From the NCBI RefSeq assembly GCF_030028105.1, contig NC_092374.1, positions 194,179,345-194,243,344 on the forward strand: a stretch of DNA of 64,000 nt. Direction: 5' to 3'. Shown here piece by piece: positions 3,756 through 51,085 of this stretch. The DNA comes from Mobula birostris (lineage: Eukaryota). The notes below the pieces were generated by a model that was not told where the DNA came from, did no database searches, and saw only the letters and a program-made list of their open reading frames with translations. The stretch's first letter is position 1; each line of letters opens with the position of its first letter. Made by a program: the position numbers and the translations under genes.

Positions 3756-3993
3756 NNNNNNNNNNNNNNNNNNNNNNNNNNNNNNNNNNNNNNNNNNNNN
3801 NNNNNNNNNNNNNNNNNNNNNNNNNNNNNNNNNNNNNNNNNNNNNNNNNNNNNNNNNNNNNNNNNNNNNNNNNNNNNNNNNNNNNNNNNNNNNNNNNNNN
3901 NNNNNNNNNNNNNNNNNNNNNNNNNNNNNNNNNNNNNNNNNNNNNNNNNNNNNNNNNNNNNNNNNNNNNNNNNNNNNNNNNNNNNNNNNNNNN
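3756..3993. other. Assembly gap (N run)
   Basis: 238 N. Confidence 1.
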
Positions 3994-4447: not shown

Positions 4448-4795
4448 NNNNNNNNNNNNNNNNNNNNNNNNNNNNNNNNNNNNNNNNNNNNNNNNNNNNN
4501 NNNNNNNNNNNNNNNNNNNNNNNNNNNNNNNNNNNNNNNNNNNNNNNNNNNNNNNNNNNNNNNNNNNNNNNNNNNNNNNNNNNNNNNNNNNNNNNNNNNN
4601 NNNNNNNNNNNNNNNNNNNNNNNNNNNNNNNNNNNNNNNNNNNNNNNNNNNNNNNNNNNNNNNNNNNNNNNNNNNNNNNNNNNNNNNNNNNNNNNNNNNN
4701 NNNNNNNNNNNNNNNNNNNNNNNNNNNNNNNNNNNNNNNNNNNNNNNNNNNNNNNNNNNNNNNNNNNNNNNNNNNNNNNNNNNNNNNNNNNNNNN
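4448..4795. other. Assembly gap (N run)
   Basis: 348 N. Confidence 1.
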
Positions 4796-7690: not shown

Positions 7691-8304
7691 TGAGGGGTGA
7701 TTGACAAGTTCGTGGCCTAAGATAGACGGAGTCAATGTTAGAAAACCTAGCACATTTATTTTTCAACATAGTCCCCTCCTACATTTACACACTTAGTCCA
7801 GCGATTGTGGAGCACACGGATCTTGGACCTCCAGAAGGTGTCCACGGCAGGGGTGAATGATAAGTTTGTGGCCTGTGGTAGAAGGAGATGAGTTATACAG
7901 CTCTCGTTACATGCACATGCAGTTCAACTCTTCGAGTGATTATGCAGAAAGTTTGAAGTTAATAACTCATCTCCTTCTACATTAGGCCACAAACCTATCA
8001 ATCACCCCTGATGAGTTATTAACTGATGAGTTATTAACTTCAAACTTTCTGCATAATCACTCAAAGAGTTGAACTGCACGTGCATGTAATGAGAGCTGTA
8101 TAACTCATCTCCTTCCACCTTAGTCCACAAACTTATCAATCACCCCTGCTGTGGACACTTTCTGGAAGTCCAAAATCGTATGCTCCACAACCGCTAGACT
8201 AATTGTGTAAATGTAGGAGGGGACTATGTTGAAAAATAAATGTGCTAGGTTTTCTAAAATTGACTCCTTCTACATTAGACCATGAACTTATCAATCACCC
8301 CTCA
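7691..8304. mobile_element. Mariner-derived fold-back MITE, TA TSD
   Basis: TA|tgaggggtgattgacaagttcgtggcc ... catgaacttatcaatcacccctca|TA; left and right arms (~270 bp each) are reverse complements. Confidence 0.85.
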
Positions 8305-21313: not shown

Positions 21314-21643
21314 GAAAAAGCAAGAACTTCATGGTTACACAAGGCCAGTCCAGTATATTTGTAGGTGAGGGTGAAATGGTCCTCTTGGTCTGTAGCCATA
21401 ATGCCAATCACTCTGGAGACACCGTGTTCTACAGCTGGTACAGGAATACATCTGAAGTCTCCAACGGGATGACAGAGTTTGCAGGGCGCGTCCTTGGGCC
21501 TGACCAGGAGGATTCATTCAAAGTTTCCATAAAGCTGGTGGACGTGAGGGAGAGTGATTCTGGAATGTATTACTGCAAAGTACGGTTAGACGGGATTGGC
21601 GTGGAAATTGGAGAAGGTGTACGGCTGACTGTGAGTCACACAC
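21314..21643 (+). CDS. NCR3: NCR3/NKp30-family VJ-type IgSF V-domain exon (phase 1-1)
   Basis: Acceptor cccactgcag|G; donor C|gtgagt. Canonical C...W...DSGMYYC and in-exon J-like GEGVRLTV. EVSNGMTEFAGRV and DVRESDSGMYYCKVRLDGIGVEIGEGVRLTV resemble human NKp30 EVRNGTPEFRGRL and DVRGHDASIYVCRVEVLGLGVGTGNGTRLVV (recalled). Confidence 0.88.
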
Positions 21644-21679
21644 GTGAGTGGTTCCCCAGCCCGAGACAATACTGAGCTT

Positions 21680-24290
21680 ATTACCACTCACTAACACCCA
21701 CCCACCCCCATCAACTTTCTATTTCTGGAGCCCTGTCCGGTTTCCCCGCACTCTGCGTAAAAATTTAACCCCTGACATCTCCTCTGTACCTACTTCCAAG
21801 CACCTTAAAACTATGCACTCTCGTGTTAGCAATTTCAGCCCTGGAGAAAAGCCTCTGACTATCCACACAATCAATGCCTCTCATTATCTTGTACATCTCT
21901 ACCAAGTCACCTCTCATCCTCCATCGCTCCAAAAAGAAAAGGTCAATTTCACTTAACCTATTCTCATACGGCATTCTTCCTAATCCAGACAACAGCCTTG
22001 TAAATCTCCTCTGCACCCTTTCTATGGTTTACACATCCTTCCTATAGCGAGCCGACTAGAAATGAGCACAGTACTCCAAATGGGGTCTGACCAGAGTCCT
22101 ATATAGCTGCAACATTACCTCTCGGCTCTTAAATTCAATCCCACGATTGATGAAGGCCAATGCACCATATGCTTTCTTAACCACAGAGTCAACCTACGTA
22201 GCAGCTTTGAGTGTCCTATGGACTCAGACCCCAAGTTCCTACTGATCCTCCACACTGCCAAGAGTCTTGCCATTAATGCTATATTCTGCCATCATATTTG
22301 ACCTACCAAAATGAACCACCTCACACTTATCTGGGTTGAACTCCATCTGCTACTTCTCAGCCCAGTTTTGCATCCTATCAATGTCCCATTGTAACCTCTG
22401 ACAGACCTCCACGCTATCCACAACACATAACCTTTGTGTCATCAGCAAATTTACTAACCCATCCCTCCACTTCCTCATCTAGGTCATTTATAAAAATCAC
22501 AAAGAGTATGGGTCCCAGAACACATCCCTGAGTCACACCACTGGTCACCGGCCTCCATGCAGAATATGACATGTCTACAACCACCCTTTGCCTTCTGTGG
22601 CAACCCAGTTCTGTATCCACAAATCAATGCCCCCTTGGATCCCATGCCTCCTTACTTTCTCAATAAGCCTTGCATGGGGTACCTTATCAAATGCTTTGCT
22701 AAAATCCATATACACAACATCTATGGCTCTACCATCATCAATGCGTTTAGTCACATCCTCAAAAAATTCAACCAGGTTCGTAAGGCATGACCTGCCTTTG
22801 ACAAAGCCATGCTGACTATTCCTAATCATATTATGCCTCTCCAAATGTTCATAAATCCTGCCTCTCAGGATCTTCTCCATCAACTTACCAGCCAATGAAG
22901 TAAGACTCACTCAGCTATAATTTCCTGGGCTATACCTACTCCTTTTCTTGAATAAGGGAACAACTTCTGTAACCCTCCAATCCTCCAGAACCTCTTCCAT
23001 CCTCATTGATGATGCAAAGATCATTGCCAGAGGCTCAGCAATTTCCTCCCTTGCCTCCCACAGAATCCCAGGGTACATCCCATCTGGTCCCAGTGACTTA
23101 TCAAACTTGACGTTTTCCAAAAGCTCCAGCACATCCTCTTTCTTAATATCTATATTCTCAAGCATTTCAGTCCACTGCAAGTCATCTTTATAATTGCCAA
23201 AATCCTTTTCCACAGTGAATGCTGAAGCAAAGTATTCATTAAGTACTCCCACTATTTCCTCCGATTCCATACACACTTTTCCATTGTCACACTTAATTGG
23301 TCCTATTATCTCACGTCTTATCCTTTTGCTCTTCACATACTTGTAGAATGCCTTGGGGTTTTCCTTAATCCTGACCACCAAGGCCTTCTCATGTCCCCTT
23401 CTGGCTCTCCTAATTTCATTCTTAAGCTCCTTCTTGCTCGCCTTATAATCTTCTAGATTCATATCATTACCTAGTTTTTTGAACCTTTCGTAAGCTCTTC
23501 TTTTCATCTAGACTAGATTTACAACAGCCTTTGTACACCACGGATCTTGTACCCGACCATCCTTTCCATGTCTCATTGGAACGTACTATCTCAGAACCCC
23601 ACGGAAATATCCCCTGAACATTTGCCACATTTCCTCCATACGTTTCACTGAGAACATCTGTTTCCAGTTTATGCTTCCAAGTTCCTGCCTGATAGCCTCA
23701 TATTTCCCCTTACTCCAATTAAATGTTTCCCTAACTTGTCTGTTCCTATCCCTCTCCAATGTTGTGGTAAAGGAGATAGAATTGTGATCACTGTCTCCAA
23801 AATGCTCTCCTACTGAAAGACCTGACACCTGGCCAGGTTCGCTTCCAAATACCAGATCAAGTATAGCCTCTCCTCTTGTAGACTTATCTACATATTGTGT
23901 CAAGAAACTTTCCTGAACACACCTAACAAACTCCACCCCATCTAAACCCCTCACTCTAGGAAGATGCCAGTCAATATTTGGGAAATTAAAATCTCCCACC
24001 ACAACAACCTGTTATTATTGCACCTTTCCCTTTTACTATTGGGTGGTCTATAAAAAAAACTCCCAGTAGAGTTATTTCCCCCTTCCTGTTTCTAACTTCC
24101 GCCCACAGAGACTCAATAGACAATCTTTTCCTGATTTCCTCCTTTTCTGCAGTCATGACGCTATCTCTGATCAACAATGTCACGCCCCCTCCTCTTCTGC
24201 CTCTTTCCTTGTCTTTTCTGAAATATTTGAAGCCTGGCTCTCTAAGTAGCCATTCCTGCCCCTGAGCCATCCAAGGCTCTGTAGATGGGA
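21680..24290 (-). mobile_element. ~2.6-kb decayed CR1 ORF2 (EN-linker-RT-3') in the NCR3 intron
   Basis: ORFs 23986-24270, 23586-24002, 22911-23507, 22575-22910, 22414-22620 (KFADDTK) and 21765-22016. Confidence 0.9.
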
Positions 24291-30355: not shown

Positions 30356-31807
30356 GAAACATAGAAACATAGAAACATAGAAAATAGGTGCAGGAGTAGG
30401 CCATTCGGCCCTTCGAGCCTGCACCGCCATTTATTATGATCATGGCTGATCATCCAACTCAGAACCCCGCCCCAGCCTTCCCTCCATACCCCCTGACCCC
30501 CGTAGCCACAAGGGCCATATCTAACTCCCTCTTAAGTATAGCCAATGAACTGGCCTCAACTGTTTCCTGTGGCAGAGAATTCCACAGATTCACCACTCTC
30601 TGTGTGAAGAAGTTTTTCCTAATCTCGGTCCTAAAAGGCTTCCCCTCTATCCTCAAACTGTGGCCCCTCGTTCTGGACTTCCCCAACATTGGGAACAATC
30701 TTCCTGCATCTAGCCTGTCCAATCCCTTTAGGATCTTATACGTTTCAATCAGATCCCCCCTCAATCTTCTAAATTCCAACGAGTACAAGCCCAGTTCATC
30801 CAGTCTTTCTTCATATGAAAGTCCTGCCATCCCAGGAATCAATCTGGTGAACCTTCTTTGTACTCCCTCTATGGCAAGGATGTCTTTCCTCAGATTAGGG
30901 GACCAAAACTGCACACAATACTCCAGGTGTGGTCTCACCAAGGCCTTGTACAACTGCAGTAGTACCTCCCTGCTCCTGTACTCGAATCCTCTCGCTATAA
31001 ATGCCAGCATACCATTCGCCTTTTTCACCGCCTGCTGTACCTGCATGCCCACTTTCAATGACTGGTGTATAATGACACCCAGGTCTCGTTGCACCTCCCC
31101 TTTTCCTAATCGGCCACCATTCAGATAATAATCTGTTTTCCTATTTTTGCCACCAAGGTGGATAACTTCACATTTATCCACATTAAATTGCATCTGCCAT
31201 GAATTTGCCCACTCACCCAACCTATCCAAGTCACCCTGCATCCTCTTAGCATCCTCCTCACAACTAACACTGCCACCCAGCTTCGTGTCATCCGCAAACT
31301 TGGAGATGCTGCATTTAATTCCCTCATCCAAGTCATTAATATATATTGTAAACAACTGGGGTCCCAGCACTGAGCCTTGCGGTACCCCACTAGTCACCGC
31401 CTGCCATTCTGAAAAGGTCCCGTTTATTCCCACTCTTTGCTTCCTGTCTGCTAACCAATTCTCCACCCACACCAATACCTTACCCCCAATACCGTGTGCT
31501 TTAAGTTTGCACACTAATCTCCTGTGTGGGACCTTGTCAAAAGCCTTTTGAAAATCCAAATATACCACATCCACTGGTTCTCCCCTATCCACTCTACTAG
31601 TTACATCCTCAAAAAATTCTATGAGTTTCGTCAGACATGATTTTCCTTTCACAAATCCATGCTGACTTTGTCCGATCATTTCACCGCTTTCCAAATGTGC
31701 TGTTATCACATCCTTGATAACTGACTCCAGCAGTTTCCCCACCACCGACATTAGGCTAACTGGTCTATAATTCCCCAGTTTCTCTCTCCCTCCTTTTTTA
31801 AAAAGTG
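30356..31807 (-). mobile_element. Young 5'-truncated CR1 LINE with uninterrupted RT/C-terminal ORF and (tttctatg)n tail
   Basis: Open frame from LFKKGGREKLGNYRPVSL through KFADDTKL to GYGGKAGAGF* (30459); tail agaaacat repeats at 30356-30383. Confidence 0.95.
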
Positions 31808-31968
31808 GAAACATCGATTGTTTATTCATTTCCGTAGACGCGGCCTGACCTGCTGAGTTCCTCCAGCACCTCGTGTGTGCTGCAGTACCATTTATAGATG
31901 GGTGCGCATCTCCCAGCATCAGAGACCAACTCCAATAACTCCATAAAGGCCCATCATCTTTATGAACT

Positions 31969-32054
31969 TTTATTGACATTCAGCGCGGCACTTGCAATAT
32001 TACAAAGAAATCCAAGAGTCAATAAATTAGTCACATCAATAAATAAATAAATAC
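31969..32054 (-). promoter_or_regulatory. Candidate TRAF 3' end: overlapping ATTTA cluster (32038-32054) and AATAAA (31969-31974)
   Basis: Minus strand reads gtatttatttatttatt, then AATAAA ~65 nt downstream; ~2.2 kb after the TRAF stop. Confidence 0.4.
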
Positions 32055-34237: not shown

Positions 34238-35137
34238 TCACAGCTGCAGTCCCATGGGATCCACCATCACCTTGATGTAGATGGTGTCGTTCCTGAGGTA
34301 CTGGCTGGGCCCCTTCTGGAAGAGCTCGTGCCGGGCGAAGGTGGGGCAGCCGCTGGCCACGTTCATGTGGCTCCGCGGCTTCTGGAAGGAGCTGCTCAGC
34401 GGGTCGGGCGAGAAGGACTCTCGCAGGTGCCGCTGGCCGGCCTGGTCCAGCAGCAGGAAGGTGACCTTCTGCCGGAAGGGCCAGGGCAGAACCTCGTCAT
34501 AGTCGCCCCGCACCAGCGCCAGGAAAAGGGAGAGGTGGCTGCCCTTGCCAGCGCCGTCGCCGTTGGGGTAGACCCGGCAGCAGAGGCGGTAGCCGAAAGG
34601 GTGGGTGGTGAAGTGCGGTGAGTAGAAGGACGGCCGCTGTCCTGCCTTGGCCGCCGCCATCTTCGCGGAGAAGTCTTTGATCTTCCAGACCAGGACGCCG
34701 TTGGTGCTGAGGGGCGGGGTGGGGGAAGCCAGGCCTGCCTGCGCTGACAGCTCTGCTGAGCGCAGCCCTGGCTTCTTCTGCAGGGCGTGAATGGTCTGCT
34801 CGAGGTGGAGGCACTTCTGCTGCAGCGCCTCGATCACCTGGGCGTAGCGGTCCAGCTCCCCATTCAGGCTGCGCACTGACCTCTCCAGGCCGTCGGCCCG
34901 GCCCTCCAGGGCCTGCAGGCCCCGGTCCGCAGCAACTCCCAGCTCTGACTCGGTGTTGCCGTCCAACACCCTGGAGGGCTCGGCCGTCAGCATCCTCCCG
35001 GCCTTCTCAGTGGGCTCCCGGGGCGCGTCCCCGCCGCAGGTTCTCCCGGATCTCAGGCTGGTGGCGAGGGACAGGACCTGCAGGAGGTGAGTCTGCTGGG
35101 CAACTCGGAGGTGCTCGTTCAGATCCTCCCGGTGAAA
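34238..35137 (-). CDS. TRAF gene coding exon 7 (end of ZF5, coiled coil, MATH/TRAF-C, stop)
   Basis: Acceptor ccctaccccctcag|TTT; 900 nt; NGVLVWKIKDF...RVYPNGDGAGKGSHLSLF...LPWPFRQKVT...PDPLSSSFQKP...MNVASGCP...IKVMVD. Confidence 0.95.
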   Translation of the reverse strand, partial: FHREDLNEHLRVAQQTHLLQVLSLATSLRSGRTCGGDAPREPTEKAGRMLTAEPSRVLDGNTESELGVAADRGLQALEGRADGLERSVRSLNGELDRYAQVIEALQQKCLHLEQTIHALQKKPGLRSAELSAQAGLASPTPPLSTNGVLVWKIKDFSAKMAAAKAGQRPSFYSPHFTTHPFGYRLCCRVYPNGDGAGKGSHLSLFLALVRGDYDEVLPWPFRQKVTFLLLDQAGQRHLRESFSPDPLSSSFQKPRSHMNVASGCPTFARHELFQKGPSQYLRNDTIYIKVMVDPMGLQL

Positions 35138-36454
35138 CTGAGGGGGTAGGGTGGGAGAAACAAAAGAGCAAAGGAACATCAGAGTCTATCCGAAATAAAA
35201 ACACGCAACTCTGTGGAGAGAGAAATGGTTAATATTGGCAGGGAATTCAGTATAAAAGTCTGGAAATTGAATAACAGTTTTCACTTGGGGATATCATGCA
35301 CAGTTCTGGGCGAGAAGATCTGGAGTCTTTGGAGAGGGTGTAGAAGAACTTCACGAGGATGCTTCCTGGCTTAGCGGGTATGAGCTGTCAGGAGAGGTTG
35401 GACAAAATTGGGTTACTTTCTCTGGAAGACCAGTGGCTGAAAGGAGACCTGGTAAAGGTTTAGAAATTTGTGAGAGACATAGATTGAGTAGCCAGCCAAA
35501 ATCTACTTCCCAGGGTGGAAGGTCAATTTACGTGCACTTAAATTGAGGGGATTTTTACAGCCGGGGATAGAATGGCCTGCTGGGGTAGTGATAGAGGCAG
35601 ATACAAGTAGGGGCTTTAACACACTTTTTTTTGGATAAATGAATACAAATAGGGAATGGAGGGAAATGAATCACACAGACAGATCAGCTATAATTGTGTT
35701 CAACACAGACACTGAGGGTCAGAGGGGGCCAGTAGGAGGAGGCGTACAGGAGCGAGATGTAGTTAGTGTCGCTTCTACACTACTCAATGTCAGCAAGGCC
35801 AAGTGATGGCGGGGCGGGGTCAACGGTGGAAAGGATGAGCCGCGTCACGTTCCTAGATTCAACATCTCAGAGGGTTTGTCCTGGACCCAACACATTGATA
35901 CAATCACCAGTGGCTATAATTCGTTAGGAGTCTGAAGAGATTTCATATGTCACCAAAGACCCTAGGGCATTCCTACAGACTCACGGTGAAGAGCGCTCTG
36001 ACTGGGTGCATCACCGCCCAGGACGGAGGCCCCATTGTACAGGACAGAAAGACGCTAAAGACGGTCGTGGACTCCACCAACTCCACGATGGGCACGACCC
36101 TCCCCAGCATCAGGGACATCTTCAAGATGCAATGCCTCAGGAAGGCAGCCTCACCGTGAAGGACCCTCACCATTCGGGACAAGCTGATTCTACCATCAGG
36201 GAGGGGATACAGGAGCACTCTGAAGCCACGAGCGGAATCTTGATACTCCTCTTTTGGCACTATTTAATTATGTATTTTTCATAACTTATAGCAATTTTTA
36301 CATCTTGCAAAAACTTTCCCAACATAAGTCTGTGATTATGAATCTGATTCTGATTCTGATTCTGCAGTGCCATTTGATCCTGTGTCCACTCAGAAGCACT
36401 TCATACCTGGGCTTCGGAGCGGAGATCAGCTGACGTGCACACTAGGATACTAAC

Positions 36455-36541
36455 CTGTTCCAGACAGCCGACATCCTTAAAGGGACAGGCCACCTTCACC
36501 TTGGGACAGTTGCCATGGAGGGGGTCACAGTGTTGTTCCAA
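36455..36541 (-). CDS. TRAF coding exon 6 (zinc finger)
   Basis: ttacag|LEQHCDPLHGNCPKVKVACPFKDVGCLEQ|gttagt; 87 nt, phase 0-0. Confidence 0.88.
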
Positions 36542-37996
36542 CTGTAAGAGAGAAATAAATGTAAAGGGTTTGCGTCAGCAAGAGTGATCCAAACTGTTAC
36601 ACTTACACGAAACAGGTCAAATTCCTCTGACATCTCACAGGATATTTACATCGCTATCTATAATGCCGTCTCAAGAAGCCAAAGGTTTCCCCAAGGAGGC
36701 AGCTCAACCCCACCACCCATGGGACAATAGAGGCTGCCATTGGTTTCATTCTGGAATGTATCATTCAAAGTGTCCTGACTGGTTACATCCTGCTCTGTCA
36801 TGGCTATTCAAATGCAGAGTTAGTGGACTCTGGCCAGTAAATCACGGGCACATCCCTCCCCACCGTTCAGGAGTACCTACAGAAGGTGCTGCCTCGGGCA
36901 GGAGGTACAGAAGCCAGAAGTCCCACATCAACAAGTCCAAGAACAGCTACTCCTTCCCTTCAACCATTCGGTCCTTGAACCAACCTGCACAACCCTCATC
37001 ACTACCTCAATACAGCAACACCACGACCACTTTGCACTATAATGGACCTCTTTTGTTCTAACTGTGATCTTTCATGTATAGTTTATAATTATTTTAAGTT
37101 TTTCTTGTGATTACTGCCTACCTAGTATAAAGATTATAGATTAGCTTTATTCGTTGCATCTAAATAGTGAAATGCATCGTTTGCATTAATAATCAATACA
37201 GTCTGAAGAAGTGGTGGCGATTGGAAAATTCCCACAACTCACTAAGCCTAACCCTAACATCTTGGGAATATGGGAAGCAACCGGAGGACCAGGAGGAAAC
37301 CCACGCAGTCACGGGGAAAGCATGCAATCTCCTTACAGACAGCGGCGGAATTGAACCCGGGTCACTGGCACTATAAAGTGTTGTGCCAACCATTATGTAC
37401 CTGTGATGCTGATACAAGTTTTCGTTGCACCTGGACATACTTGTGCAGATGACAAGAAACACGAGTTTAACTTTGGTATTTATTATCTATCCCCATTTGC
37501 CCCAAAGCCAATCATATTGCTGGGTCTGGCGTCACACAGGGAATGTTCCGACGGGAAACGGAAGGCAGATGCATGTCCCTGAAGGAATCTTCCTTGTGGC
37601 ATAGAAGAGAGGCCATTCAACTCATTGACTCCATACTAGCTTGCATGTCATTCAATCCAACCTAATCCCCTCCCTGAAGGAATCACATTCTTATATTTAT
37701 TGTGACATAGAAGAGCGGCCATTTTGCCCATGGACACCATACTAGCTCTCAGATAAACCAATCTGACCCAATCCTCCATTTATTTCACTGTAACCTATTC
37801 ATCCTTACAAGCCAATCAACACCTACACTTACCCGCCTCCCCCCCCCACCCCCCACCTGACCACCACGGAGGGTGGGGGTGGTGGTGAAACCACATGGTC
37901 ACAGGTAGGACATGCAAACTCCACACAGACAGTACCCAGGAAGTTACAGGGCCAGAGTGGTGGCCGTGCAGGGAGCTCTCATTAATGGATTCTTAC

Positions 37997-38068
37997 CTCC
38001 GTCTTTGTCAAGTCGGCCTGGCCACAGAGAGGGCAGCTCTCCTGTTTTCCACACGTTGCCATGTGGTC
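37997..38068 (-). CDS. TRAF coding exon 5 (zinc finger)
   Basis: ttttccag|DHMATCGKQESCPLCGQADLTKTE|gtaaga; 72 nt, phase 0-0. Confidence 0.88.
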
Positions 38069-39112
38069 CTGGAAAACAGAGACAGGAGGTCGACTGTATT
38101 ATAGGCTGCAGACGGACACAGTACACGACGCATGTGTGTGGGAGAGGTGGGGGGAGGGTCAGTAACGTTACCGCATGGACGAGGACGAGGAGGCAGGGCC
38201 GTCGGGTTGGGAATAGGGCCCTTCAGGGTGCAGTTAACTAAAAAGGGATGCGGAGCAGGATCAAGCACCAGGGTCCCCTCATGCTGGACTCCTGGTCCCT
38301 GTACCCTTTCCCAGTCATTTCTCACCCCTCCATTCCTACTTCCTCCGACCCAGTCTCCTAACCCGCAGTGTCTAGAACCCCGATACCCAGAACTCCATTG
38401 CCCTGTGATTCCCACCTCACGCCTTGGTGCTGTGGCAGTGTGACACACAGTTTCCCTAACTGTTCTCGTTCCCATTACCCCTCTCCCCACCCTACCACCT
38501 CCTCTGCCTTATCTCTCACTTCCCTCCTCTGTCCCCCTCATCCAGAGCCCTCTCTCCTTTCCCCCTTGACCCTAGGCAACCACCCTCCCCCTTCCACATC
38601 CCCTCACCCATCCTCCACCCCCACCTCCCACTTTTCCCCAACTCCTCTCTCTCCTCTGCTTCCTCACCCTACCCCCTATCTCTTCCAGCTTCCTCCATCC
38701 TCTCTCACCCCCACTCATTCACCCTCCACCCTCTCTCCCATCTTGTGCTGCTCCCCCCACGTCCCTCACCTTCCACCATCTCCCTCCCTTCTCATTCCAA
38801 CCCCTTCCCTCTCTCCCGCCTCTCCCTTCCCTACTCTCACTCGCTTCTCCGCCTTGTCTGTCCGGAGACACTCTCTCTCCTCTCTGACTTGCAGTCTCTA
38901 TCTCTATACATCCCTGAGTTTCATCACTCCACCACTGAAGTCCACGCCTCCACCAACTGAGCTCCCAAACTCTGGAATTTCCTTGGTTTTCCCCAACCTG
39001 GTCAGTTTCTAAAATTCCCATCACCTTCCCTTCGCTCTTGCACCGAGGAAGTAGTTTGGGACGGCACTACAGCAATGGGTTTTGAAGCTGAGAGCCAGCG
39101 CACACACCCCAC

Positions 39113-39286
39113 CTCCAGAAGCTTGTGGATGCAGAACGTCTCACAACGGGGGCAACGCTCCATCCGCCACTCGCACTGCTGGGTCTCGTGAACCAACATG
39201 TCCTTCCTGGGACCGACAGCCTCGCAGCCAAATGCCACATTGGCACAGGGCAGGACCTGGAAACCACACTGTGCCCGGTGTGTACG
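39113..39286 (-). CDS. TRAF coding exon 4 (zinc fingers)
   Basis: catgcag|RTHRAQCGFQVLPCANVAFGCEAVGPRKDMLVHETQQCEWRMERCPRCETFCIHKLLE|gtgggg; 174 nt, phase 0-0. Confidence 0.9.
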
Positions 39287-39309
39287 CTGCATGAGAGAGA
39301 AGCCAGGGA

Positions 39310-39850
39310 GAGTGCGGAGGGGAGGGGGAAGACAAAGAGAGAGAGAGAGAGAGGGGGGGAGAGGGGGAGAAGAGAGGAGGGGTTGAGCGAATAAGAGTGG
39401 GATAAAGAAAATGAATGAGGAGAGAGAGAACAAGAAAAGGAGAGACAGAAAAGAGAGAAAGTAGGGAAAAGTGAAATCAAGGAAAATAAATGAGAGAGGG
39501 AAAGAGAGAATGAGAATGAAATAGGAATGATGAAAAGAGAGAGAGGAGAGGGAAAGAATGTGAGAAAAAGCATGGCGAAGCAAGAAAGAGGAAAAAGCAA
39601 AAGAAGAGAGAGCAAGAAGGAAAGGATAATCAAGACAGGACAGATAGAAAAAGAATGGATGAAATAAAGAGAAAGAAAAACAGAATAGAAAGAAAGAAAG
39701 TGTAAGGAAATGAGAGAGTGAAAATAGAGAAAAGTGTTTAGGAAGGAGTATAAATTAAGAGAGGGAGAGAGAGTTAGGAAGAAACAGAGAAAAAGAGAAA
39801 GAAAGATGAGGAAGAGCACAAAAGGGAAAAACAGAGGGAAGAGAGAGACC
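39310..39850. repeat. Long G/A-rich tract (giant polypyrimidine tract on the TRAF coding strand)
   Basis: Direct reading; source of spurious low-complexity ORFs. Confidence 0.85.
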
Positions 39851-41284
39851 AAAAATGATCAATAAGTATAAAACTCATATCTACACAAGTAAAAAGTTGT
39901 GCTCTATGTGAACCACGCTGCCGCTGTGCCAGGGATTGTGTGCCCAATGAGTCCACCCCAGTGCCCAACTAGGGGTAATGCCAATCACTAATGCCTTCTC
40001 TAATGAAGTACCTATCAACCTCTGCTTTAAATATACTCACTGACTCGGCCTTCACAGCCGTACGTGGCAGTAAGTACCACAGAATCACCAATAAATTCCT
40101 GCTCATCTCTGTTCTAAGAGAGTGTATCTCTCAGAAGGGCCAGTTCTACCTGCTCTGCAGACCAGGTGATGAGATTTTGAGTTAGGGTTAGAGTTTTGAA
40201 ATGCTCTGGAGGTCATCATCTCTGGCATTACTGTTGGGCTTGCCGGGAACACCCGTGAGTTTCCAGCAGGTACTTGCTGGAAGACAGAAACACAGTAAGC
40301 TCCCACTATTACTGATACGGCAGGTGATCTGCTGTTTTTCAATCAGTAGAGGGGTGAATTTCTCAGTTTTCTTCTCAAAATGGCACAGGAAGAGGATATT
40401 CGACCCACTGTCTCTCTGCCAGCTCTCAAAACAATCCCAGCACTACAATGGACCTTTTGTCCGTTCTTTCATGTATAATTTATGTTTATAATTTTGTGCC
40501 TCCTGTGAATCCTGTTTATCTGATGTTACGTGCCTGTGAGGCTGCTGCAGGGAAAGTTTTCATTGCACCTGTGCCTACGTGTACTTGTGGATGTGACAAT
40601 GAACTCAACTCTAGTCTTTGACTTTATTCCACTTATAGAAAATAGAATACAGAACAGTACTGGCCTTTCGGCCCACAATCCTTCTAACCTACGCTACAAT
40701 CAATCTAACCCTTCCCTCCTACATATGTTTCCATTTTTCTATCATTCATGTAACATGTACCGGGGAGACGTCTGATCTCTCTGCCTCTACCACCACCACT
40801 GGCAATGCATTCCATAAGCCTATCACTCTCCCTGTAAAGAATTTAAATCTGACAACCCCACCCCTCATACTTTCCTCTAACCTCCTCACAGTAAGGCAAT
40901 TTACAGTGGCTGATTAACACACCAAACCACTGATGTGGGAGTTTGAGAGAAAACTAAAAACACACACACACACACATAAACACAGCACCAGAAGTCAGGA
41001 TCAAACCCAATGAGGATCTGTGAGACAGCAGGACTACCTGCTACAAGCAGGCTGCCCCTCCTCCCATTTCAGCAGGAGACCCGTTGAATCACTCCGGCAT
41101 TCCCACCGGTTTCGAATCCAGCGGGCATGTGGACCCAGTGGACTCCACTGGCGGTCCCTGCTGGCCACCTAGTGGCAGGAGTTGGTATTACTTCCTCCAG
41201 CCCCCTTTCTCCTTGCATCCCATCCCATCCCCTCTGGGAGTTTCAGTCCATACCCCACCACCCCCACCCAGCACAGAGACTTAC

Positions 41285-41389
41285 CAGGTAGTTCCGCAGC
41301 GAACCGACCCAGTCACAGCCCTCCAAGTGAGCCGTGCAGTGAATCTTTGTGACGTAGGCGTCATTCTCCGCTGCCCTGTCCAGGTAAAC
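41285..41389 (-). CDS. TRAF coding exon 3 (RING-ZF1 linker and ZF1)
   Basis: ctgcag|VYLDRAAENDAYVTKIHCTAHLEGCDWVGSLRNYL|gtaagt; 105 nt, phase 0-0. Confidence 0.9.
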
Positions 41390-43679
41390 CTGCAGCGTGG
41401 ATAAAACGCGAGAGGTTAGGTAATGGTGGAAACCTTGTTCCCTGCGGCTTCTTGCTGCCAATTGGACCTCTGCTGCTATGTATCTGTGTATGTAAGAAGG
41501 CGGCTCTGACAACACAGAGGTTCGTAGAGTCATACAGTACGAAAGCAGGCTCTTCGGCCCACATTGTCCATGCCATGATTTTTGTCCATCTACCTTAATC
41601 CCATGACCGAAAAGCCTGGATAGAGTAGAGATGGAAAGGATGTTTCCTTTAGTAGGAGAGTCTACAATCCAAGGGAATGGCCTCAGGATAAAAGGACTAA
41701 AACTGTAAAGAGAAAGGATTTCTTCAGCCAGAGGGTGGAGAATCTCTTGCCAGAGAGGGCTGTGGAGGCTAAGTCATTTTGGTGTATTTAAGGCAGAGAT
41801 TGATAAATCCCTGATTAGTAAGGGGGTTGAGGGTTCACAGGAGGGGGTTGAGAATGAGAGTGAAAAAAAGCTGGATTTGAATCGTGGAGCAAACTCAAAG
41901 AGCCAAATGGCCTAGTTCTGCCCCTATATATTCTGGCCAATTACACATTAGGACTGCATATAAAAATACACAAATTTTGGAGATCTGAAATAAAAGCAGA
42001 AAATGCTGGGGAAACTCAGCAGGTTGGGCAGCATCTGTGGAGAGAGAAGCAGTTCAGGTCAAAGAGCATTGATCAGTATTAGCCGATGAATGGTCTTACA
42101 GCTGAAATGTTCACTGTTTCTCGTTCCATAGGTGCTGACTGACCTGCTGAGTGTTTCCAGCATTCTTTGCACATGCTTCTTTGGCCATGCTGAGAGTACA
42201 GGAACAGCGTTGGGCACAATACAGGTACGACGTGATTGCATACGGAGGGGACTTATTGGGGCTGGAAAATCCAAGCTCCAAGGACAAATTAGATAGGTTA
42301 GGATGGAGTTTTCTCTGGAACAGAGGGGGCTGAAGGGAGGCTTAATTCCCATGTAGAAAATTATATGGAACCATGATTGAATAAAGGACCAATTTCCCCT
42401 GGCTGAGAGCTTTAGAACATAGAACAAGACTGGCCCTGTGGCCCACCAAACATGATACAAATTAAATTACCCAGTAAATCTCACCTGACTCTGCACAGGA
42501 CCCATATCCCTGCATTCACTGCATATCCATGTGTCTTTCTAAAGGCCTCTTAAACATCACTATTCCACCACCACTGCTGGTAGCCCATTCCAGTAACCCA
42601 GCACTCTGTGCAGAAAGAACTCTCCTCCACACATCTGCTGTAAACTTTGAATCTCTCACCTTAAGTGCCTATCTAGTATTTGACATTTTATTTTTCCCCT
42701 GGGGGAAAGACTCTGACTGTCTACTTGAAGTTTGGATAAGTACTTGGACAGGAAGGTTACGGTGAGCTGCGATCTAGGTGCGGGTCGGTGGGTCGGCGGG
42801 ACTTGGCAGAATGATAGTTTGTATGGACTAGATGGGCCGAAGGGTCTGTTTCCCTGCTGCAGTGCTCGCTGACCCTACCTCTGCCTCTGAGACTTCAATC
42901 AGCCACTGACGCTCCAGAGAAAACTATCCAATTTTGTCCAACCTCTCCTCATAGTCTGCACCCTCTGATCCAACTTGGTAAACCTCTTCTGTACCTTTTC
43001 CAAAGTCTCCACATCTTTCCAGCAATCAGATATCTCAGGTATTCACTAAATGAATTAGAATAAATGAGAGGAGCAGTTTCTCTGCCTCAAGGATGGTAGG
43101 GTTTCTGGAGCTCTCTAGCAGAAAAGTTGAGTGAATCCGAAACCCCTCACTACAATGGAATAGTAGTTAGATGTGTACTTAAAGGGCTACGACCCCAATG
43201 CTACTCAGCTGAGCAGCACAGACACAATGAGCCAAAGGGCCTCCTTCTATACCACAAATGCTCTATGACCACCAAGTCCCATGAACGGCCTATGTCAGCA
43301 AAGCAAAACTTTCCATCCCTCAAGTTCCCGTCACCTCTTGGAAAGTTTTAGTTCCCCCTTGTATTTTACCTATTAAAATTCCCAGAAGGAGGGAGAGGGA
43401 TGTGCGGAAATTCCTGGAGATCATGAGTTGGTGGGGCCAAGAGTGATGACATCAACTTTGTTCATCGCCAGCCCTGAGTGGCCACAGAAGCGCAGTGTTT
43501 CTCTTCATCCTCCCTGCCTGCGCAGACCTCCTGAACTAGCCAGCGGAGGCTGCCTTCAATACCACTCCGAACCGTGCCAAAGCAACATCATGCACTAATG
43601 ACTCACTACTGTCTGTCTCTGGGAATCTCCCCTCTTCTCCAGCAAAACACAGATAACTCATTCCCTACGTAGGAATTCC

Positions 43680-44220
43680 AGTTAAATTCCAATTTGTAAG
43701 ATATTCCCCCATATCCGTTACTCGCTACATAAACCTCCAGAACTCCACAATTAGATTCCGTCTGTAATTCACTCCTGAATATTCATTATTCTGTGTATAA
43801 ACTACCGGAACCTCTTGAAATTCTACCCTGTAACTCACTCCCAAGTACAGCATTCTATATATAAACCTTCTGAACTCCTTAACTAAATCACTCCTGGGAA
43901 TCCATTATTCTGTCCTCTGAACTCCCCAACTAGATTGCAGACTGTAATTCACTCCCAGGTATCTATTATTGTATGTATAATCCCCCTATGCTCCTCAGCT
44001 AGATTCCAGACGGTAACTCACTACCAAATATCTGTTATTCTATGTATAATTCACCAACTAAATTCCAGCCTGTAACTCATCCCTGGAACCCATTACCTTA
44101 CAAATACAACTTGTGAACCCTCAATTAAATTCTAGCTTGTACCCATCCCTGGGTGTCCATTGTCCAATAATATAACCATCTGAGTTCTCTGACAGATTGC
44201 AGCCCATAAGTCAGTCCTGG
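43680..44220. repeat. Degenerate minisatellite, ~65-75-bp unit (ctgtaactcactcccaggtatctgttattctatgtataa...tagattcca)
   Basis: About 8 recognisable units. Confidence 0.75.
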
Positions 44221-44355
44221 AGACAGTGCCCACGAAGCAACATTCCTTGCAACCCCCACAACACAGCCCAGCTCTAATCCACATCTCCCTCCTTTGCAAA
44301 TACGTCAAACAGCAATAACAGTGATAAGATGCTTACAACACATAAGAGGTCCTAC

Positions 44356-44410
44356 CTTGGAACGAAGAACCTTCTTTTGGCAAATGTAGCAATCCGCTTC
44401 ATTTCCTGTC
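44356..44410 (-). CDS. TRAF coding exon 2 (completes RING)
   Basis: ttttag|G TGNEADCYICQKKVLRSK|gtagga; 55 nt, phase 2-0; supplies the final CxxC. Confidence 0.88.
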
Positions 44411-47400
44411 CTAAAATATGCAGAAAAAGATTAATATTTTCACATTCATTTCTTCTAACTTGGTGTTCCCAGTATGTGAGTGTTTGAGCCATTGCTGGGT
44501 TTTTGCTTTTCACAGTCAAGCCCCTTCCCTTCCAAAGGAACACCGAAGAAAAAGTACAGCTGTCCAGAGAAGATGCAGTGCACGGATGGGGTCAAATTGC
44601 ACTCAGTCCCTTCAGGGGAGATCACTGGAATTCTCCACCCTCAGTCGGAGGACTGTTGGAGGCTCCCTCATTTGTTGTGTTCAAAACAGAGGTCAATTGA
44701 TTTGTAGATGTTAAAGAAAGACAGGGGTGTAGGGAAAGGACAGGAAAATGTGACAAGGGATCATTAATTCACCTGGTTTCTCCTAGCAGATTGTACATTA
44801 GTTAGTCATTGTAAATTGTCCAAAGCGGGATCTTTGGACAGACATATGTCATGGAATTTGTTACTTAGCAGCAGCAGTACCTAAAAATTATGATAGGTAG
44901 ATAGATAGATGAAGATAGGTGGATAGATAGAGGGAGGTAGATAGACGAAGATAAATGAATACACGGGTGAAGACAGAAAGATCAAGAAGAGAGCAAAATG
45001 GTCACCAGCATGAATGCGAGAGGGAGAATCGAGATGGGGTGGAGTGGTGACAGGTGTTGAAGGGACAATAATATAGCATCTGTGTTGGATTATTGTAAAT
45101 AGATGTTGGATGATCGAGAGATGGCTTTGTCAGTGCTGCAGGGCTCTGATTTTTATGACTGGTTGACCAGGGTTGAGTTGCCAAGTCTATTCATGTTCCC
45201 TATAGACTTATATTTTAGGAAAGGATAAGTAGTTGGCCTCTGCAGAATGGCCCATTGGGTAGCTGAGTGATAGAGTCTGGGGACAGTTTATGAGCATGGA
45301 AGAAAATAAAAAGAGGGTTGGGGTAGGATTAATGTACATGGTGATTGACTGTCATCAAAGACTTAGTGATTTAAAAGACTTGTTTCTGTGCTGTACTCTC
45401 CTATGACCATAAGACATAGGAGCAGATTTAGCCCATTTAGTTCTTCGAGTCTGTTCTGCCATGCAATCATGGCTGATTGATACTATGCCAACCCTGTTGC
45501 AATGTTGGAAACAGCATGGCACATTGGTGCCAGAAGCTTGGCAACATGTGTAGGCTGCCTCCTCCCAGCACATTTTGGACTCTGTAGGAACAACACGTTT
45601 TTTTTTTGTACATTAAAGATAATCTAATCTTTAAACACATTCAATTTGCCTCTCAGAAAGTCCTTCAGCAGCAGATCATCAACCTCTTCACTCCCTAACT
45701 ATATGGGCAGCAGGCTCACGGGCACATTGCCACTTCCAACAACTACCCTGCCTAAATCACTCCACCGACTCAAGAACAGACCACGTCCCCATCCAGATCC
45801 TACTCCACCATAAACACACTCTTCACCGAAGATTCAAGAAGACTATCCACTATAGGTGAGAATTAGGAACAAAATAAAAGCAGAAGATGCCGGAAACACT
45901 CGGCAGGTCAGGCAGCGCCCATGGAGAGAGAAACAGAGTTAACATTTCAGGACAAAAACTGAATTGAAATGTTAAATCAGAGAGTCTTGACAAAGGGTCT
46001 TGGCCTGGAAGGTCAACTCTTTAATTCTCTCCATAGATGCCGCCAGCATGCTGAGTTCCTTCAGCATTTTCTGTGTTTCTCTGGATTCCCAGCATCAGGA
46101 GAACCCCTTGCATTAACATTTTTTCCTCATTATTTTCTCAGTGCTCCCTGCATTTTCTACTTCATTTTTGATTTCGGGTTTCCAACACCTAAAATTGCTT
46201 TTCACTTTCACAATGAGAATTCACCAGTAGGTGCAGGCGTGGACACCGAAGGGATTTTAAAATGAAAATAGGTTCAACTATACACACGCTGTCCATATAT
46301 TGATCACTGAGATTCTAAACTCTAACTTTAGGTACTTTTTTCTTCTTTCTGTTTGTCTCAGGATGGGGCATTTTGCCAACCAGATTTCTCTTGTATGTTC
46401 CGGCTCGCTGGGTATAGTAGTCATAGTCATACTTTATTAATCCCGGGGGAAATTGGTTTTCATTACAGTTGCTCCATAAATAATAAATAGTAATAGAACC
46501 ATAAATAGTTAAAAATATGTATGTCCCAGTAAATCTGACTCCACATCAGTACCCAGACTTACAACATTAGCCACACATTACAGGATGGGGAAAAGCTGCG
46601 GAGGGTTGCAAACGCAGCTAGTTCCATCATGGGCACTAGCCTCCCCTCTTCTGAGGGCGTCTTCAAAAGGTGATTCTTCAAAATAGGGGGCATACATCAT
46701 TAAGGAACCCTATCACCCAGGGCATGCCCGCTCCTTATTGCTACCATCACGAACAAGTTACAGGAGCCTGAAGACCCACACTCAACATTTTAGAAGCAGC
46801 TTCTTCCTCTCTGCCATCAGATCTCCGAACGGATGATGAACCAACCATGAACTACTTCATTAATTATTTGCTCTCCGTTTTTGCACTACTTATATACAGT
46901 ATATATCTCTTATTGTAATTTATAGTTTATTTTATCTACTGCCACAATACAACCGATTTAAAAACATACGCCATTGATATTAAAACTGATTCTGATTACA
47001 ATGGAGATTATCTGTCCGTTACTTCATCCCACAAATCTTCTGTGTTCCGCTCAGATCCCTCTCTCACCTTCTCTGCTACCTGGTCTAAACTTGTTTTCAC
47101 TCTTGCTCAGTCCTGATGAAGTGACTCCGACCTTAGAAGTTAACTGTTTCTTATCCCGTAAACGCTGCTGAGTTCTTTTCAAACATTTTCGGTTTTTGTG
47201 ACTGTACCTAAGCTCTTTGGACCCGAATGGCTTACTGTCATGGTGCATTTTTCCTTGAAGGCTAGGAGAAGGCTTGTTAGACATAAGAGGGGCATTAAAA
47301 GGCTTACTGGGGAAGGGGGGGGGATCCATCCTGTACAAGGATGATAAAGTTTTAATTTGAGAACTATGTAAATATGGATTAAAGTTATGTAATAAACATA

Positions 47401-47475
47401 TTTTTAAAAAGACAAACTCTGAGAATTCTATCCACCTCCCGGCGATGATCCACCACCTCTGTCCCCCTGACTCAC

Positions 47476-47624
47476 CTGAACAGATTCTCCAGGCAGGCGG
47501 TACAGTAGCGGTGGCCACATTCCGTCTGCTTCGGTTTGATCAGCAAGAAGCGGCAGGCGGAGCACAGCAGGCAGGAGCTGGCGATCGGATCCACTGGGCT
47601 GATGCCTGACACCAAGGCTACCAT
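47476..47624 (-). CDS. TRAF coding exon 1 (ATG, C3HC4 RING first part)
   Basis: Acceptor ggccag| at 47633, ATG at 47624; [51 protein letters not shown]|gtgagt; 149 coding nt, phase 2. Confidence 0.9.
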
Positions 47625-47699
47625 AATCCCACACTGGCCGAGGAAAGAGACGCAAATTAAACTTCTGCTACTCAAATACAGCGCCGGCGTCAGAGAGTG

Positions 47700-48500
47700 C
47701 CTTTAAGAATGCAGGCTACGGAATCCCCTGTGCGTCACTAGACGTTACAAATCCTGCCCTTTGTGACGTCATAGGTACAACCCAGCGCTCCAGTATAATG
47801 TTCCCGGACGTCATAGGTACAACCCAGCGCTCCAGTATAATGTTCCTCCCATCCGGGCAACGTTCCAATCCCTTTGTGACGTCACGGTCTTTCACCTTGC
47901 CGAAACTTGAATAGGGGAACTGAACGGAACAAGAAGGTGCAGAGAATGGAACGTACATCATCTTTCAAACAAAATGCTGAAAGGAACTCAGCGGGCCATG
48001 CAGCATCCGTGGAGAAAAGCAGACCGTTAAACGTTTCGGGTCAACACACACAGAGTGCTGGAGGAACTCAGCGGGTCAGACAGCACCTATGCAGGAAAAT
48101 GACCTTTCGCGCCGAGATGCTTCAGCGGGACTTACAGGAAGGGTCAGGGTATCGTCCTCATTTTCCTATCACTTGGGGAGCGTGTTGAGGTAATCACGAG
48201 CTCGGCGCTGTTATGGTAAATCGAGGCATGCATGACTCAGGGACTTAGTCTTCGGGGAAGGTTGGACGGGGGTAAAGATAGAAATGAAATCTAATGTGCT
48301 GCGGTCATCGTCACGAGAAGCAAGCTGTGTGAGATGCGCGAAAGGAAATCTGAAGATGCGAATCCGAAATAGAAACAGAAAAATCTAGAAAGATTATGTT
48401 TCAACTCGCTGACCTTGGATTGGATTTGGTGTGCTGCGTATGTGACTCTGCACAGGTAAGCGCCACCGGGACTTTTAAAACCCGCATCCTTGTTTTCAAA
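47700..48500. promoter_or_regulatory. CpG-rich candidate (bidirectional) promoter region
   Basis: TGACGTCA at 47764 and 47877; GAAAnnGAAAnnGAAA at 48366-48381; minus donor CCT|gtaagt at 48136; plus donor CAG|gtaagc at 48455. Confidence 0.5.
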
Positions 48501-49627: not shown

Positions 49628-51085
49628 TTAGAATAGAATAGTACAGCACAGTACAGGCCCTTCAGCCCACGATGTTGTGCCGACCCTCAAACCCTGCCTC
49701 CCATATAAGCCCCCAGCTTAAATTCCTCCAAATACCTATCTAGTAGTCTCTTAAACTTCACCAGTGTATCTGCCTCCACCACTGACTCAGGCAGTGCATT
49801 CCACGCACCAACCTCTCTCTGAGTAAAAAATCTTCCTCTAATATCCCCCTTGAACTTCCTACCCCTTACCTTAAAGCCATGTCCTCTTGTATTGAGCAGT
49901 GGTCCCCTGGGGAAGAGGCGCTGGCTGTCCACTCTATCTATTCCTCTTATTATCTTGTACACCTCTATCATGTCTCCTCTCATCCTCCTCCTCTCCAAAG
50001 AGTAAAGCCTTAGCTCCCTTAATCTCTGATCATAATGCATACTTTCTAAACCAGGCAGCACCCTGGTAAATCTCCTATGTACCCTTTCCAATGCTTCCAC
50101 ATCCTTCCTACAGTGAGGTGACCAGAACTGGACACAGTAGTCCAAGTATGGCCTAACCACTTGTTTTATAGAGCTGCATCATTACATCGCGACTCTTAAA
50201 CTTGACTTATGAAAGCTAACACCCCATAAGCTTTCTTAACTACCCTATCCACCTGTGAGGCAACTTTCAGGGATCTGTGGACATGTACCCCCTGATCCCT
50301 CTGCTCCTCCACACTACCAAGTATCCTGCCATTTACTTTGTACTCTGCCTTGGAGTTTGTCCTTCCAAAGTGTACCACCTCACACTTCTCCGGGTTGATC
50401 TCCATCTGCCACTTCTCAGCCCACTTCTGCATCCTATCAATATCTCTCTGCAATCTTTGACAATCCTCTACACTATCTACAACACCACCAACCTTTGTGT
50501 CGCCTGCAAACTTGTCAATCCACCCTTCTACCCCCACATCCAGGTTGTTAATAAAAATCATGAAAAGTAGAGGTCCCAGAACAGATCCTTGTGGGACACC
50601 ACTAGTCACAATCCTCCAATCTGAATGTACTCCCTCCACCACGACCCTCTGCCTTCTGCAGGCAAGCCAATTCTGAATCCACCTGGCCAAACTTCCCTGG
50701 ATCCCATGCCTTCTGACTTTCTGAATAAGCCTACCATGTGCAACCTTGTCAAATGCCTTACTAAAACCCATATAGATCACATCCACTGCACTACCCCCAT
50801 CTATATGCCTGGTCACCTCCTCAAAGAACTCTATCAGGCTTGTAAGACACGATCTGCCCTTCACAAAGCCATGACTGTCCCTGATCAGACCATGATTCTC
50901 TAAATGCCCAGAGATCCTATCTCTAAGAATTTTTTCCAACAGCTTTCCCACCACAGACGTAAGGCTCGCTGGTCTATAATTACCCGGACTATCCCTACTA
51001 CCTTTTTGAACAAGGGGACAACATTCACCTCCCTCCAATCCTCCGGTACCATTCCCATGGACAACGGGGACATAAAGATCCTGGC
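49628..51085 (-). mobile_element. 5'-truncated CR1 (RT and C-terminus) inserted in a Penelope-like fragment
   Basis: ORFs 50196-51038 and 49687-50160; tail near 49630; Penelope-type flanks on both sides. Confidence 0.85.

Follow-up and report, generated by a model that had tools for sequence, protein, structure and literature searches.

The window analysed here is a 64,000-nucleotide (nt) stretch of the genome of the manta ray Mobula birostris (NC_092374.1, positions 194,179,345 to 194,243,344). It contains, on the minus strand, a complete gene of the TRAF family, which we refer to as X together with its orthologues, and, on the plus strand, a V-type immunoglobulin exon (21325-21645) with a Pfam V-set domain, whose best match among PDB chains is human NKp30/NCR3 (E=7e-9). 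The two are convergent (tail-to-tail), the V exon lying ~12.6 kb from the TRAF stop codon, and no further host gene was noticed in the 64 kb. The TRAF gene consists of seven exons (Table 1) with GT-AG junctions throughout (AG...GT at each internal boundary) and intron phases of 2,0,0,0,0,0. The exons (149+55+105+174+72+87+900 nt) splice into an open reading frame (ORF) of 1542 nt encoding 513 amino acids (aa) and a stop codon. This structure had been proposed in an earlier examination of the letters alone (the sequence-only reading), and the spliced protein proved to be identical at 513 of 513 positions to RefSeq XP_072115312.1 (P0482) from M. birostris, which carries the name "TRAF2-like"; the hand-made junctions are therefore those of the NCBI gene model. 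The ORF list shows an in-frame "start" farther upstream, which is a TTG codon; the ATG at 47624, with A at -3 and G at +4, coincides with the start of the orthologues. The exons of the X orthologue measure 149-55-105-174-72-87-882 nt in sawfish (Pristis) and 146-55-105-174-78-72-933 nt in gar. Exon 7 alone matches TRAF proteins at E=2e-177, far beyond chance.

Table 1. Exons and putative upstream region of the TRAF gene in the window.
Feature	Position	Strand	Content	Evidence
Exon 1 (149 nt)	47476..47624	-	ATG at 47624, first part of C3HC4 RING (aa 1-49), phase-2 donor GTGAGT	Pfam RING at aa 21-61; start as in orthologues
Exon 2 (55 nt)	44356..44410	-	RING end (last Cys pair); 8-10 aa insertion seen in the TRAF1/2 group absent	
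Exon 3 (105 nt, phase 0-0)	41285..41389	-	Linker and first half of TRAF zinc finger 1	Intron positions common to TRAF2 and TRAF5
Exon 4 (174 nt)	39113..39286	-	Zinc fingers 1-3, ligands C110, C117, C124, H136, C141, C148, C151	Weak Sina_ZnF match; ligands invariant or nearly so in 27 orthologues
Exon 5 (72 nt)	37997..38068	-	Zinc fingers 3/4	Pfam zf-TRAF 163-223
Exon 6 (87 nt)	36455..36541	-	Zinc fingers 4/5	zf-TRAF E=5e-4 from exon 6 alone
Exon 7 (900 nt including stop)	34238..35137	-	No internal introns; end of zinc finger 5, disordered linker, coiled-coil helix (aa ~283-334), MATH/TRAF-C (aa 363-506)	MATH E=3e-41
Putative promoter / 5' untranslated region	47625..47930	-		Suggested by inspection of the sequence

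The encoded protein shows the architecture of the TRAF family: a RING is followed by five TRAF zinc fingers, then a coiled coil, and the C-terminus carries a MATH domain. This assignment, also made in the sequence-only reading, was confirmed by Pfam, an AlphaFold2 (AF2) model and Foldseek. Pfam places PF21363 and PF00097 (C3HC4/TRAF RING) at residues 21-61, PF02176 (zf-TRAF) at 163-223, and the MATH domain at 363-506 (PF21355, E=8e-41; PF22486, E=1e-37). PF16673 (TRAF_BIRC3_bd), the cIAP-binding TRAF-N region, was not found by Pfam in X and is present in Z, a second paralogue described below. The AF2 model, built on an alignment of 27 X orthologues (mean predicted local distance difference test score of 72), has a well defined RING and zinc-finger chain, a disordered linker (243-284) and a single long helix (283-334) followed by the MATH β-sandwich. 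When this model was compared with the PDB, the top 21 Foldseek matches were all TRAF domains of TRAF3, TRAF1, TRAF2 or TRAF5, with TRAF3 ranking first. Across the 27 orthologues there is little or no variation at the Cys/His ligands of the RING and zinc fingers or in much of the MATH core. The ratio of nonsynonymous to synonymous substitution rates (dN/dS), determined from a codon alignment with the sawfish orthologue (locus L003), is 0.21 overall, with 0.13 in the RING and zinc fingers and 0.14 in the MATH domain, against 0.37 in the linker and coiled coil. Intact X orthologues were recovered from ~40 species.

Nineteen peptide-groove residues, in human TRAF2 numbering, were mapped onto X via Talpa TRAF2, and the residue identities at those numbers were confirmed. 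Fourteen of the 19 positions are identical in every X (R393, Y395, D399, F410, F447, P449, D450, S453, S455, F456, A466, S467, G468 and P470), and the changes fall at positions 432, 448, 454, 465 and 469. L432 is replaced by Phe in all X compared except Microcaecilia, which keeps Leu, and I465 by Val in most X; both replacements are also found in TRAF1 and Z. C469 is Ser in sarcopterygian X. Other signatures are specific to X and kept from ray to lizard, such as YP(N/D)GDG instead of YLNGDG.

Since the groove residues that contact PxQx(T/S/D)-type tails in human TRAF2 are kept, X should bind such receptor tails. Its MATH/TRAF-C groove would dock on the tails of TNF receptor (TNFR) superfamily members or similar immune receptors, or on adaptors, and would read PxQxT/S-like motifs, possibly with altered specificity where R448 makes contact. 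Judging from the conserved anatomy, the helix at residues ~283-334 would trimerise X as in other TRAFs, and the intact C3HC4 RING with the five zinc fingers would let it act as an E3 ubiquitin ligase and a scaffold in signalling of the NF-kB/MAPK type. Because the cIAP-binding TRAF-N segment of TRAF1/2 is missing from X, recruitment of cIAP1/2 in the TRAF2 manner is unlikely. These features point to a predicted role of X as a trimeric receptor-proximal adaptor and E3 ligase. The mechanistic surprise would be moderate, because X belongs to a well-understood protein family.

Searches with exon 7 and with the complete X protein of Hypanus (P0001, 91% identical to that of the window) outlined the X family as a discrete set of proteins with 40-90% identity. 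In a representative library clustered at 50% identity, the family makes up five clusters, and every other match scores far lower. The members carry varying NCBI labels ("TRAF2-like", "TRAF3-like", "TRAF5-like", "TRAF1-like" and "TRAF2"). The sequence-only reading had suggested retention of the gene in cartilaginous fish, which holds for elasmobranchs (rays, skates and sharks), but X is not confined to them: it was also found in the non-teleost ray-finned fishes Polypterus, sturgeon, paddlefish and gar, in the coelacanth Latimeria, the lungfish Protopterus, caecilians, salamanders, one turtle and many squamates. The turtle and squamate proteins (P0126-P0146) are short (~362-377 aa), having lost most zinc fingers and kept the RING, coiled coil and MATH domain, a loss that recalls that of the RING in TRAF1. 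The Anolis gene (locus L002:10001-17141) has five exons of 152-55-99-120-660 nt.

The window protein is ~35-39% identical to the canonical TRAF1, TRAF2, TRAF3 and TRAF5 compared, Hypanus X is 32-35% identical to amphioxus TRAF2-likes, and the canonical vertebrate TRAFs are hardly closer to X. Against human TRAFs, the MATH-bearing exon 7 scores 187 bits with TRAF3, 168 with TRAF2, 167 with TRAF5, 164 with TRAF1, 111 with TRAF4 and 63 with TRAF6; we attribute the top score of TRAF3 to its being the slowest-evolving of these proteins rather than to kinship. The mosaic of TRAF2-, TRAF3- and TRAF5-like motifs noted in the sequence-only reading is real but not diagnostic: TRAF1, TRAF5 or invertebrate TRAFs also have the supposedly TRAF3-like NGVL, GKG and LPWPF, which represent shared ancestral states.

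Phylogenetic trees were built with FastTree (209 sequences) and with IQ-TREE under the site-heterogeneous LG+C20+F+G4 model (86 sequences; maximum likelihood (ML) with posterior mean site frequencies, PMSF), and the two were mutually consistent. In the ML tree, X forms a 100/100 clade on a long stem, apart from the clades of TRAF1, TRAF2, TRAF3 and TRAF5. Each of these four is separate with 100% ultrafast bootstrap and contains shark sequences, and Z is also separate at 100%. The TRAF2 clade (100/99) takes in shark and chimaera TRAF2, with the lamprey TRAF2-like protein as its sister. Branching within X tracks the species tree, with actinopterygians, coelacanth and lungfish, amphibians and reptiles, and elasmobranchs as its groups; therefore, X was present in the last common ancestor of jawed vertebrates. 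On sequence grounds, X is a distinct TRAF paralogue outside the named TRAF1-7 groups and no younger than that ancestor.

The RefSeq name "TRAF2-like" and the ~36-39% identity to the canonical TRAF2, TRAF3 and TRAF5 compared would suit a fast-evolving ray and shark orthologue of a canonical TRAF, such as TRAF2 as annotated, or a decaying functionless duplicate. However, canonical TRAFs occur beside X in sharks, namely TRAF3 (P0348) and a TRAF5-like protein (P0306) in Mustelus, TRAF1 (P0421) and TRAF2 (P0424) in Heptranchias, and TRAF2 (P0173) in Hemiscyllium. The same applies to bony carriers of X, including Polyodon (TRAF2, P0245; TRAF5-like, P0206), Protopterus (TRAF1-like and TRAF3-like) and Rhinatrema (TRAF2). 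The overall dN/dS and the invariant zinc ligands and groove residues speak against decay, and we regard either version as extremely improbable. X does not group robustly with any one canonical TRAF, and the sharks that carry it have canonical TRAFs as well, so the proposal of an additional paralogue that is not TRAF2, TRAF3 or TRAF5 stands.

X was considered in the sequence-only reading as a possible fourth, divergent member of the TRAF1/2/3/5 clade; an extra member it is, but not the sole one, since a further paralogue, Z, lies on the same MHC (major histocompatibility complex) chromosome and another, Y, occurs in sharks. Z is a ~459-aa protein of rays, skates, sharks and axolotl (P0344 in Mobula; P0358; P0363-P0374; P0285 in Ambystoma, labelled "TRAF1-like"), and its Pristis gene is at locus L006:10001-24587. 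It is clearly of TRAF1/2 type because of its TRAF_BIRC3_bd region, its insertion at the RING end and two MATH introns of TRAF2. In the ML tree Z stands in a trichotomy with TRAF1 and TRAF2, and it is probably the true MHC ohnologue of this pair. X and Z share a chromosome in seven species, both are MHC class III genes in the sawfish, and both are undetected in mammals. Unlike Z, which also has fewer zinc fingers, X has neither the cIAP-binding region nor the RING-end insertion nor the two MATH introns. Y is the sister lineage of elasmobranch X and was found only in the sharks Heptranchias, Pristiophorus, Cetorhinus and Heterodontus (P0015, P0121, P0122 and P0123), and in no ray or skate among the sequences retrieved. 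Its position as sister to elasmobranch X places the duplication before the shark-ray split. In Heptranchias, X, Y and Z are found together on one 21-Mb contig.

On human chromosome 9, TRAF1 (9q33.2), TRAF2 (9q34.3) and FAM102A (9q34.11) belong to the region paralogous to the MHC, and the model of two duplications of the whole genome (2R) therefore predicts MHC-resident TRAFs. The location of X, in the class III / extended part of the MHC, is as expected for a paralogue of these 9q33-34 genes. Sawfish X (P0002) maps to CM019888.1:5,879,553-5,894,324, coordinates that match LOC127586120 in the MHC gene table of PMC10751288, where the class III order is PRRC2A - DDX39B - APOM-like - BAG6-like - FAM102A-like - [X] - DDR-like (Verissimo et al. 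2023, PMC10751288 supplementary table). Three NCR3-like genes lie ~0.7 Mb from sawfish X (PMC10751288). Sawfish Z (P0363) maps to 4,617,427-4,632,013, adjoining an ankyrin-repeat gene, and corresponds to LOC127586057 in the order FAM102A-like - ABHD16A - [Z] - NFKBIL1 - CSNK2B (PMC10751288). A FAM102A-like gene is thus the immediate neighbour of X and is one gene away from Z, with ABHD16A between, an arrangement that would fit the local duplication, long ago, of a FAM102-TRAF segment. X and Z were found on one contig in Mobula, Hypanus, Pristis, Heptranchias (with Y), Hemiscyllium, Scyliorhinus torazame and Ambystoma. In the axolotl this is a contig of 848,590,089 bp, which matches the reported chromosome 13, the MHC chromosome (848.6 Mb; PMC12619710).

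In the Mobula genome itself, MHC linkage was verified only through the NKp30-like neighbour. The called genes flanking gar X carry V-set domains, which might suggest that the adjacency of NKp30 and TRAF is conserved in gar; by tblastn, however, the V domain of the window had no match in the 27.6-kb gar locus, the Anolis locus, or the sawfish X and Z loci. According to a lamprey TRAF paper (PMC7179693), only cfb, a class III gene in jawed vertebrates, separates the two traf2 genes of hagfish, an independent hint that TRAF2-type genes and the proto-MHC were linked before the cyclostome-gnathostome split. Based on the gene structure, selection, phylogeny and map positions, we consider it likely that the X locus is a functional, distinct, MHC-linked TRAF paralogue.

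The origin of X within the family was addressed with approximately unbiased (AU) tests of constrained trees and with gene structure. Three groupings were rejected: X with vertebrate TRAF3/5 (log-likelihood difference, delta lnL, of 56.6, p=5.7e-5), X with the whole TRAF3 group including invertebrates (delta lnL 13.7, p=0.017) and X with TRAF1 (delta lnL 11.6, p=0.025). Two were not rejected, namely X with the vertebrate TRAF1/2/Z/lamprey group (delta lnL 4.0, p=0.09) and X with Z (delta lnL 3.5, p=0.33), which is the least-penalised constraint. X, TRAF2, TRAF5, Z and amphioxus TRAF2 all have the first six introns, with phases 2,0,0,0,0,0. These introns are family-wide, so the 35-aa phase 0-0 exon is not specific to TRAF3; taken in the sequence-only reading as TRAF3-like, it is also present in TRAF2, TRAF5 and amphioxus TRAF2. 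Exon 2 has 79 nt in TRAF2, Z and amphioxus TRAF2, compared with 58 nt in TRAF5 and 55 nt in X. The coiled-coil/MATH region is interrupted by three introns in TRAF2, three in Z (two as in TRAF2), three different ones in TRAF5 and one in amphioxus TRAF2.

Some of these characters recall TRAF3 and TRAF5, and X could be conceived as a third 2R ohnologue of these two genes. Like them, X has a short RING end and several motifs, NGVL and LPWPF among them, its MATH domain is closest to TRAF3 (187 bits vs 168 for TRAF2), several members bear "TRAF3-like" names at NCBI, the length of exon 2 resembles that of TRAF5, and the Pfam TRAF3_RING model matches. This origin is nevertheless very unlikely, as the AU tests reject X with both vertebrate TRAF3/5 and the whole TRAF3 group, and cnidarians and sponge also have the shared states, which are thus ancestral. 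PF21363 models the RING of TRAF2/3/5 and is not TRAF3-specific, the three TRAF5 coiled-coil/MATH introns are absent from X, the coiled coil of X is much shorter than that of TRAF5, and the "CC" of the TRAF3/5 motif DNCCKRE is "AA" in X, as in TRAF2. Two related candidates were also excluded: X as the 6p21-side ohnologue of TRAF3/TRAF5, an idea taken from the PPP2R5/KLC/MARK/HSP90 paralogy, by the AU tests, and X as a pre-2R tandem partner of TRAF1 by the AU test with p=0.025.

In comparison with TRAF1 and TRAF2, X has the RING, five zinc fingers, coiled coil and MATH domain of TRAF2, the first six introns at the same positions and in the same phases, and the PxQxT/S-groove residues of TRAF2. 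It differs from TRAF2 in its sequence (~37-39% identity), in lacking TRAF_BIRC3_bd, the RING-end insertion and the three coiled-coil/MATH introns, and in forming its own 100/100 clade. As a 2R ohnologue of TRAF1/TRAF2, X would fit the location of the paralogon, and the corresponding clade is unrejected (p=0.09) yet absent from the free tree; Z fits this role better. In our assessment the balance tips slightly towards an origin of X from the TRAF1/2-type lineage of the MHC / 9q33-34 paralogon, followed by fast divergence, and Z may have been the gene that was copied. X would then have arisen as a local duplicate of its MHC neighbour Z and subsequently lost the 3' introns.

A broader and more tentative scenario, to which we give slightly less than even confidence, is that MHC class III of the ancestral jawed vertebrate held its own TRAF adaptors, X and Z, beside NFKBIL1 and NKp30 (in mammals also TNF/LT), forming an inflammatory module of receptor, ligand and adaptor that was physically part of the primordial MHC. 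X would have been neofunctionalised, without cIAP recruitment and with a retuned groove; mammals, birds, frogs and teleosts would each have lost it independently, and it would have been deprived of zinc fingers in reptiles, where the short forms may act as regulators rather than ligases. X would represent an eighth vertebrate TRAF lineage and merit a name of its own.

Several observations weigh against the favoured reading of X or against its descent from the TRAF1/2 lineage. The free ML tree puts X, with its very long stem, in a basal polytomy with sponge and cnidarian TRAFs, a position typical of long branches, and the trees have no TRAF4 or TRAF6 outgroup. The grouping of X with Z could be an attraction artefact, because both are long-branched. 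The RING-end insertion of 8-10 residues, found in TRAF1, TRAF2, Z and lamprey as well as in most TRAF2-likes of amphioxus and hemichordates, is absent from X; the short RING end, also seen in TRAF3/5, cnidarians and sponge, is the ancestral state. Nor does X have introns in the coiled-coil/MATH region (none beyond alignment column 262), including the two MATH introns of TRAF2 and Z, or the cIAP-binding region, and these three characters argue against a simple origin within the vertebrate TRAF1/2/Z clade. At the groove, R448 is Ser in elasmobranch X and mostly hydrophobic in other X. X was not detected in mammals, birds, frogs, teleosts or elephant shark in searches of protein databases, as distinct from genomes, and the case for its presumed expression comes from the RefSeq model and selection.

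Part of this evidence would suit an ancient pre-vertebrate lineage, as old as the TRAF2/TRAF3 split, which survived only in jawed vertebrates and was lost from the sampled invertebrates and cyclostomes. In the free ML tree X indeed falls outside the TRAF1/2 group and outside the TRAF3/5 group, both with invertebrate members, and X keeps the ancestral short RING end and an intron-less coiled-coil and MATH exon. However, no invertebrate or cyclostome X was present among the best 150 of 7720 matches in a library of 1.84 billion proteins, nor in the other protein searches, and many independent losses would be required. Attraction to the base of the tree is likely given the very long stem of X, and the AU test does not reject a clade, confined to vertebrates, of X with TRAF1/2/Z (p=0.09). 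We consider such an ancient lineage unlikely and favour the offshoot of the TRAF1/2-type lineage.

Vertebrate TRAFs have been treated as a closed set, TRAF1-7, defined in mammals. The results presented here suggest that jawed vertebrates began with at least one further TRAF1/2/3/5-type adaptor, and probably two with Z, both in the "inflammatory" region of MHC class III. X would add a signalling adaptor to the immune genes that were ancestrally linked to the MHC, and would provide an MHC-side counterpart for TRAF1/TRAF2 of the 9q33-34 paralogon. It also explains the inconsistent TRAF1/2/3/5-like names as a single orthology group, and for sharks, rays, salamanders and reptiles it offers a candidate adaptor in TNFR, NK-receptor or innate signalling that is specific to these lineages. 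X is already annotated automatically, under misleading "-like" names, the database names being only "TRAF2/3/5-like". In the full-text literature searched (shark, axolotl, newt, amphibian and Anolis MHC; lamprey TRAF), with subscription literature outside the search, no discussion of an MHC-linked or separate TRAF lineage was found. The main text of the shark MHC paper does not mention TRAF, X and Z appearing only as unnamed rows of its supplementary table (PMC10751288), and the MHC papers on axolotl, newt, amphibians and Anolis are equally silent on TRAF.

Upstream of the TRAF gene, within the putative promoter, a ~40-nt unit is tandemly duplicated at 47750-47900 on the minus strand, 140-290 nt upstream of the ATG. 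This interval contains two copies of TGACGTCA, the CRE/ATF-type (cAMP response element/activating transcription factor) palindrome, and one near-copy, TGACGTCC. From its letters, the duplicated unit may be a promoter element.

The intron between exons 3 and 4 contains long CT/AG-rich low-complexity tracts (38370-39850, both strands), which produce spurious Ser/Leu/Pro ORFs of 200-260 aa abutting exon 4, and the introns of gar X (L001) are filled with similar simple repeats. Runs of N occupy positions 3756-3993 (238 bases) and 4448-4795 (348 bases) of the window. Fragments of ORFs for reverse transcriptase of the LINE type (long interspersed nuclear element) are found on both strands, among other places at 8282-9369, 22575-24270, 30459-31979 and 49687-51038, the longest intact one (506 aa) being that at 30459-31979 on the minus strand.

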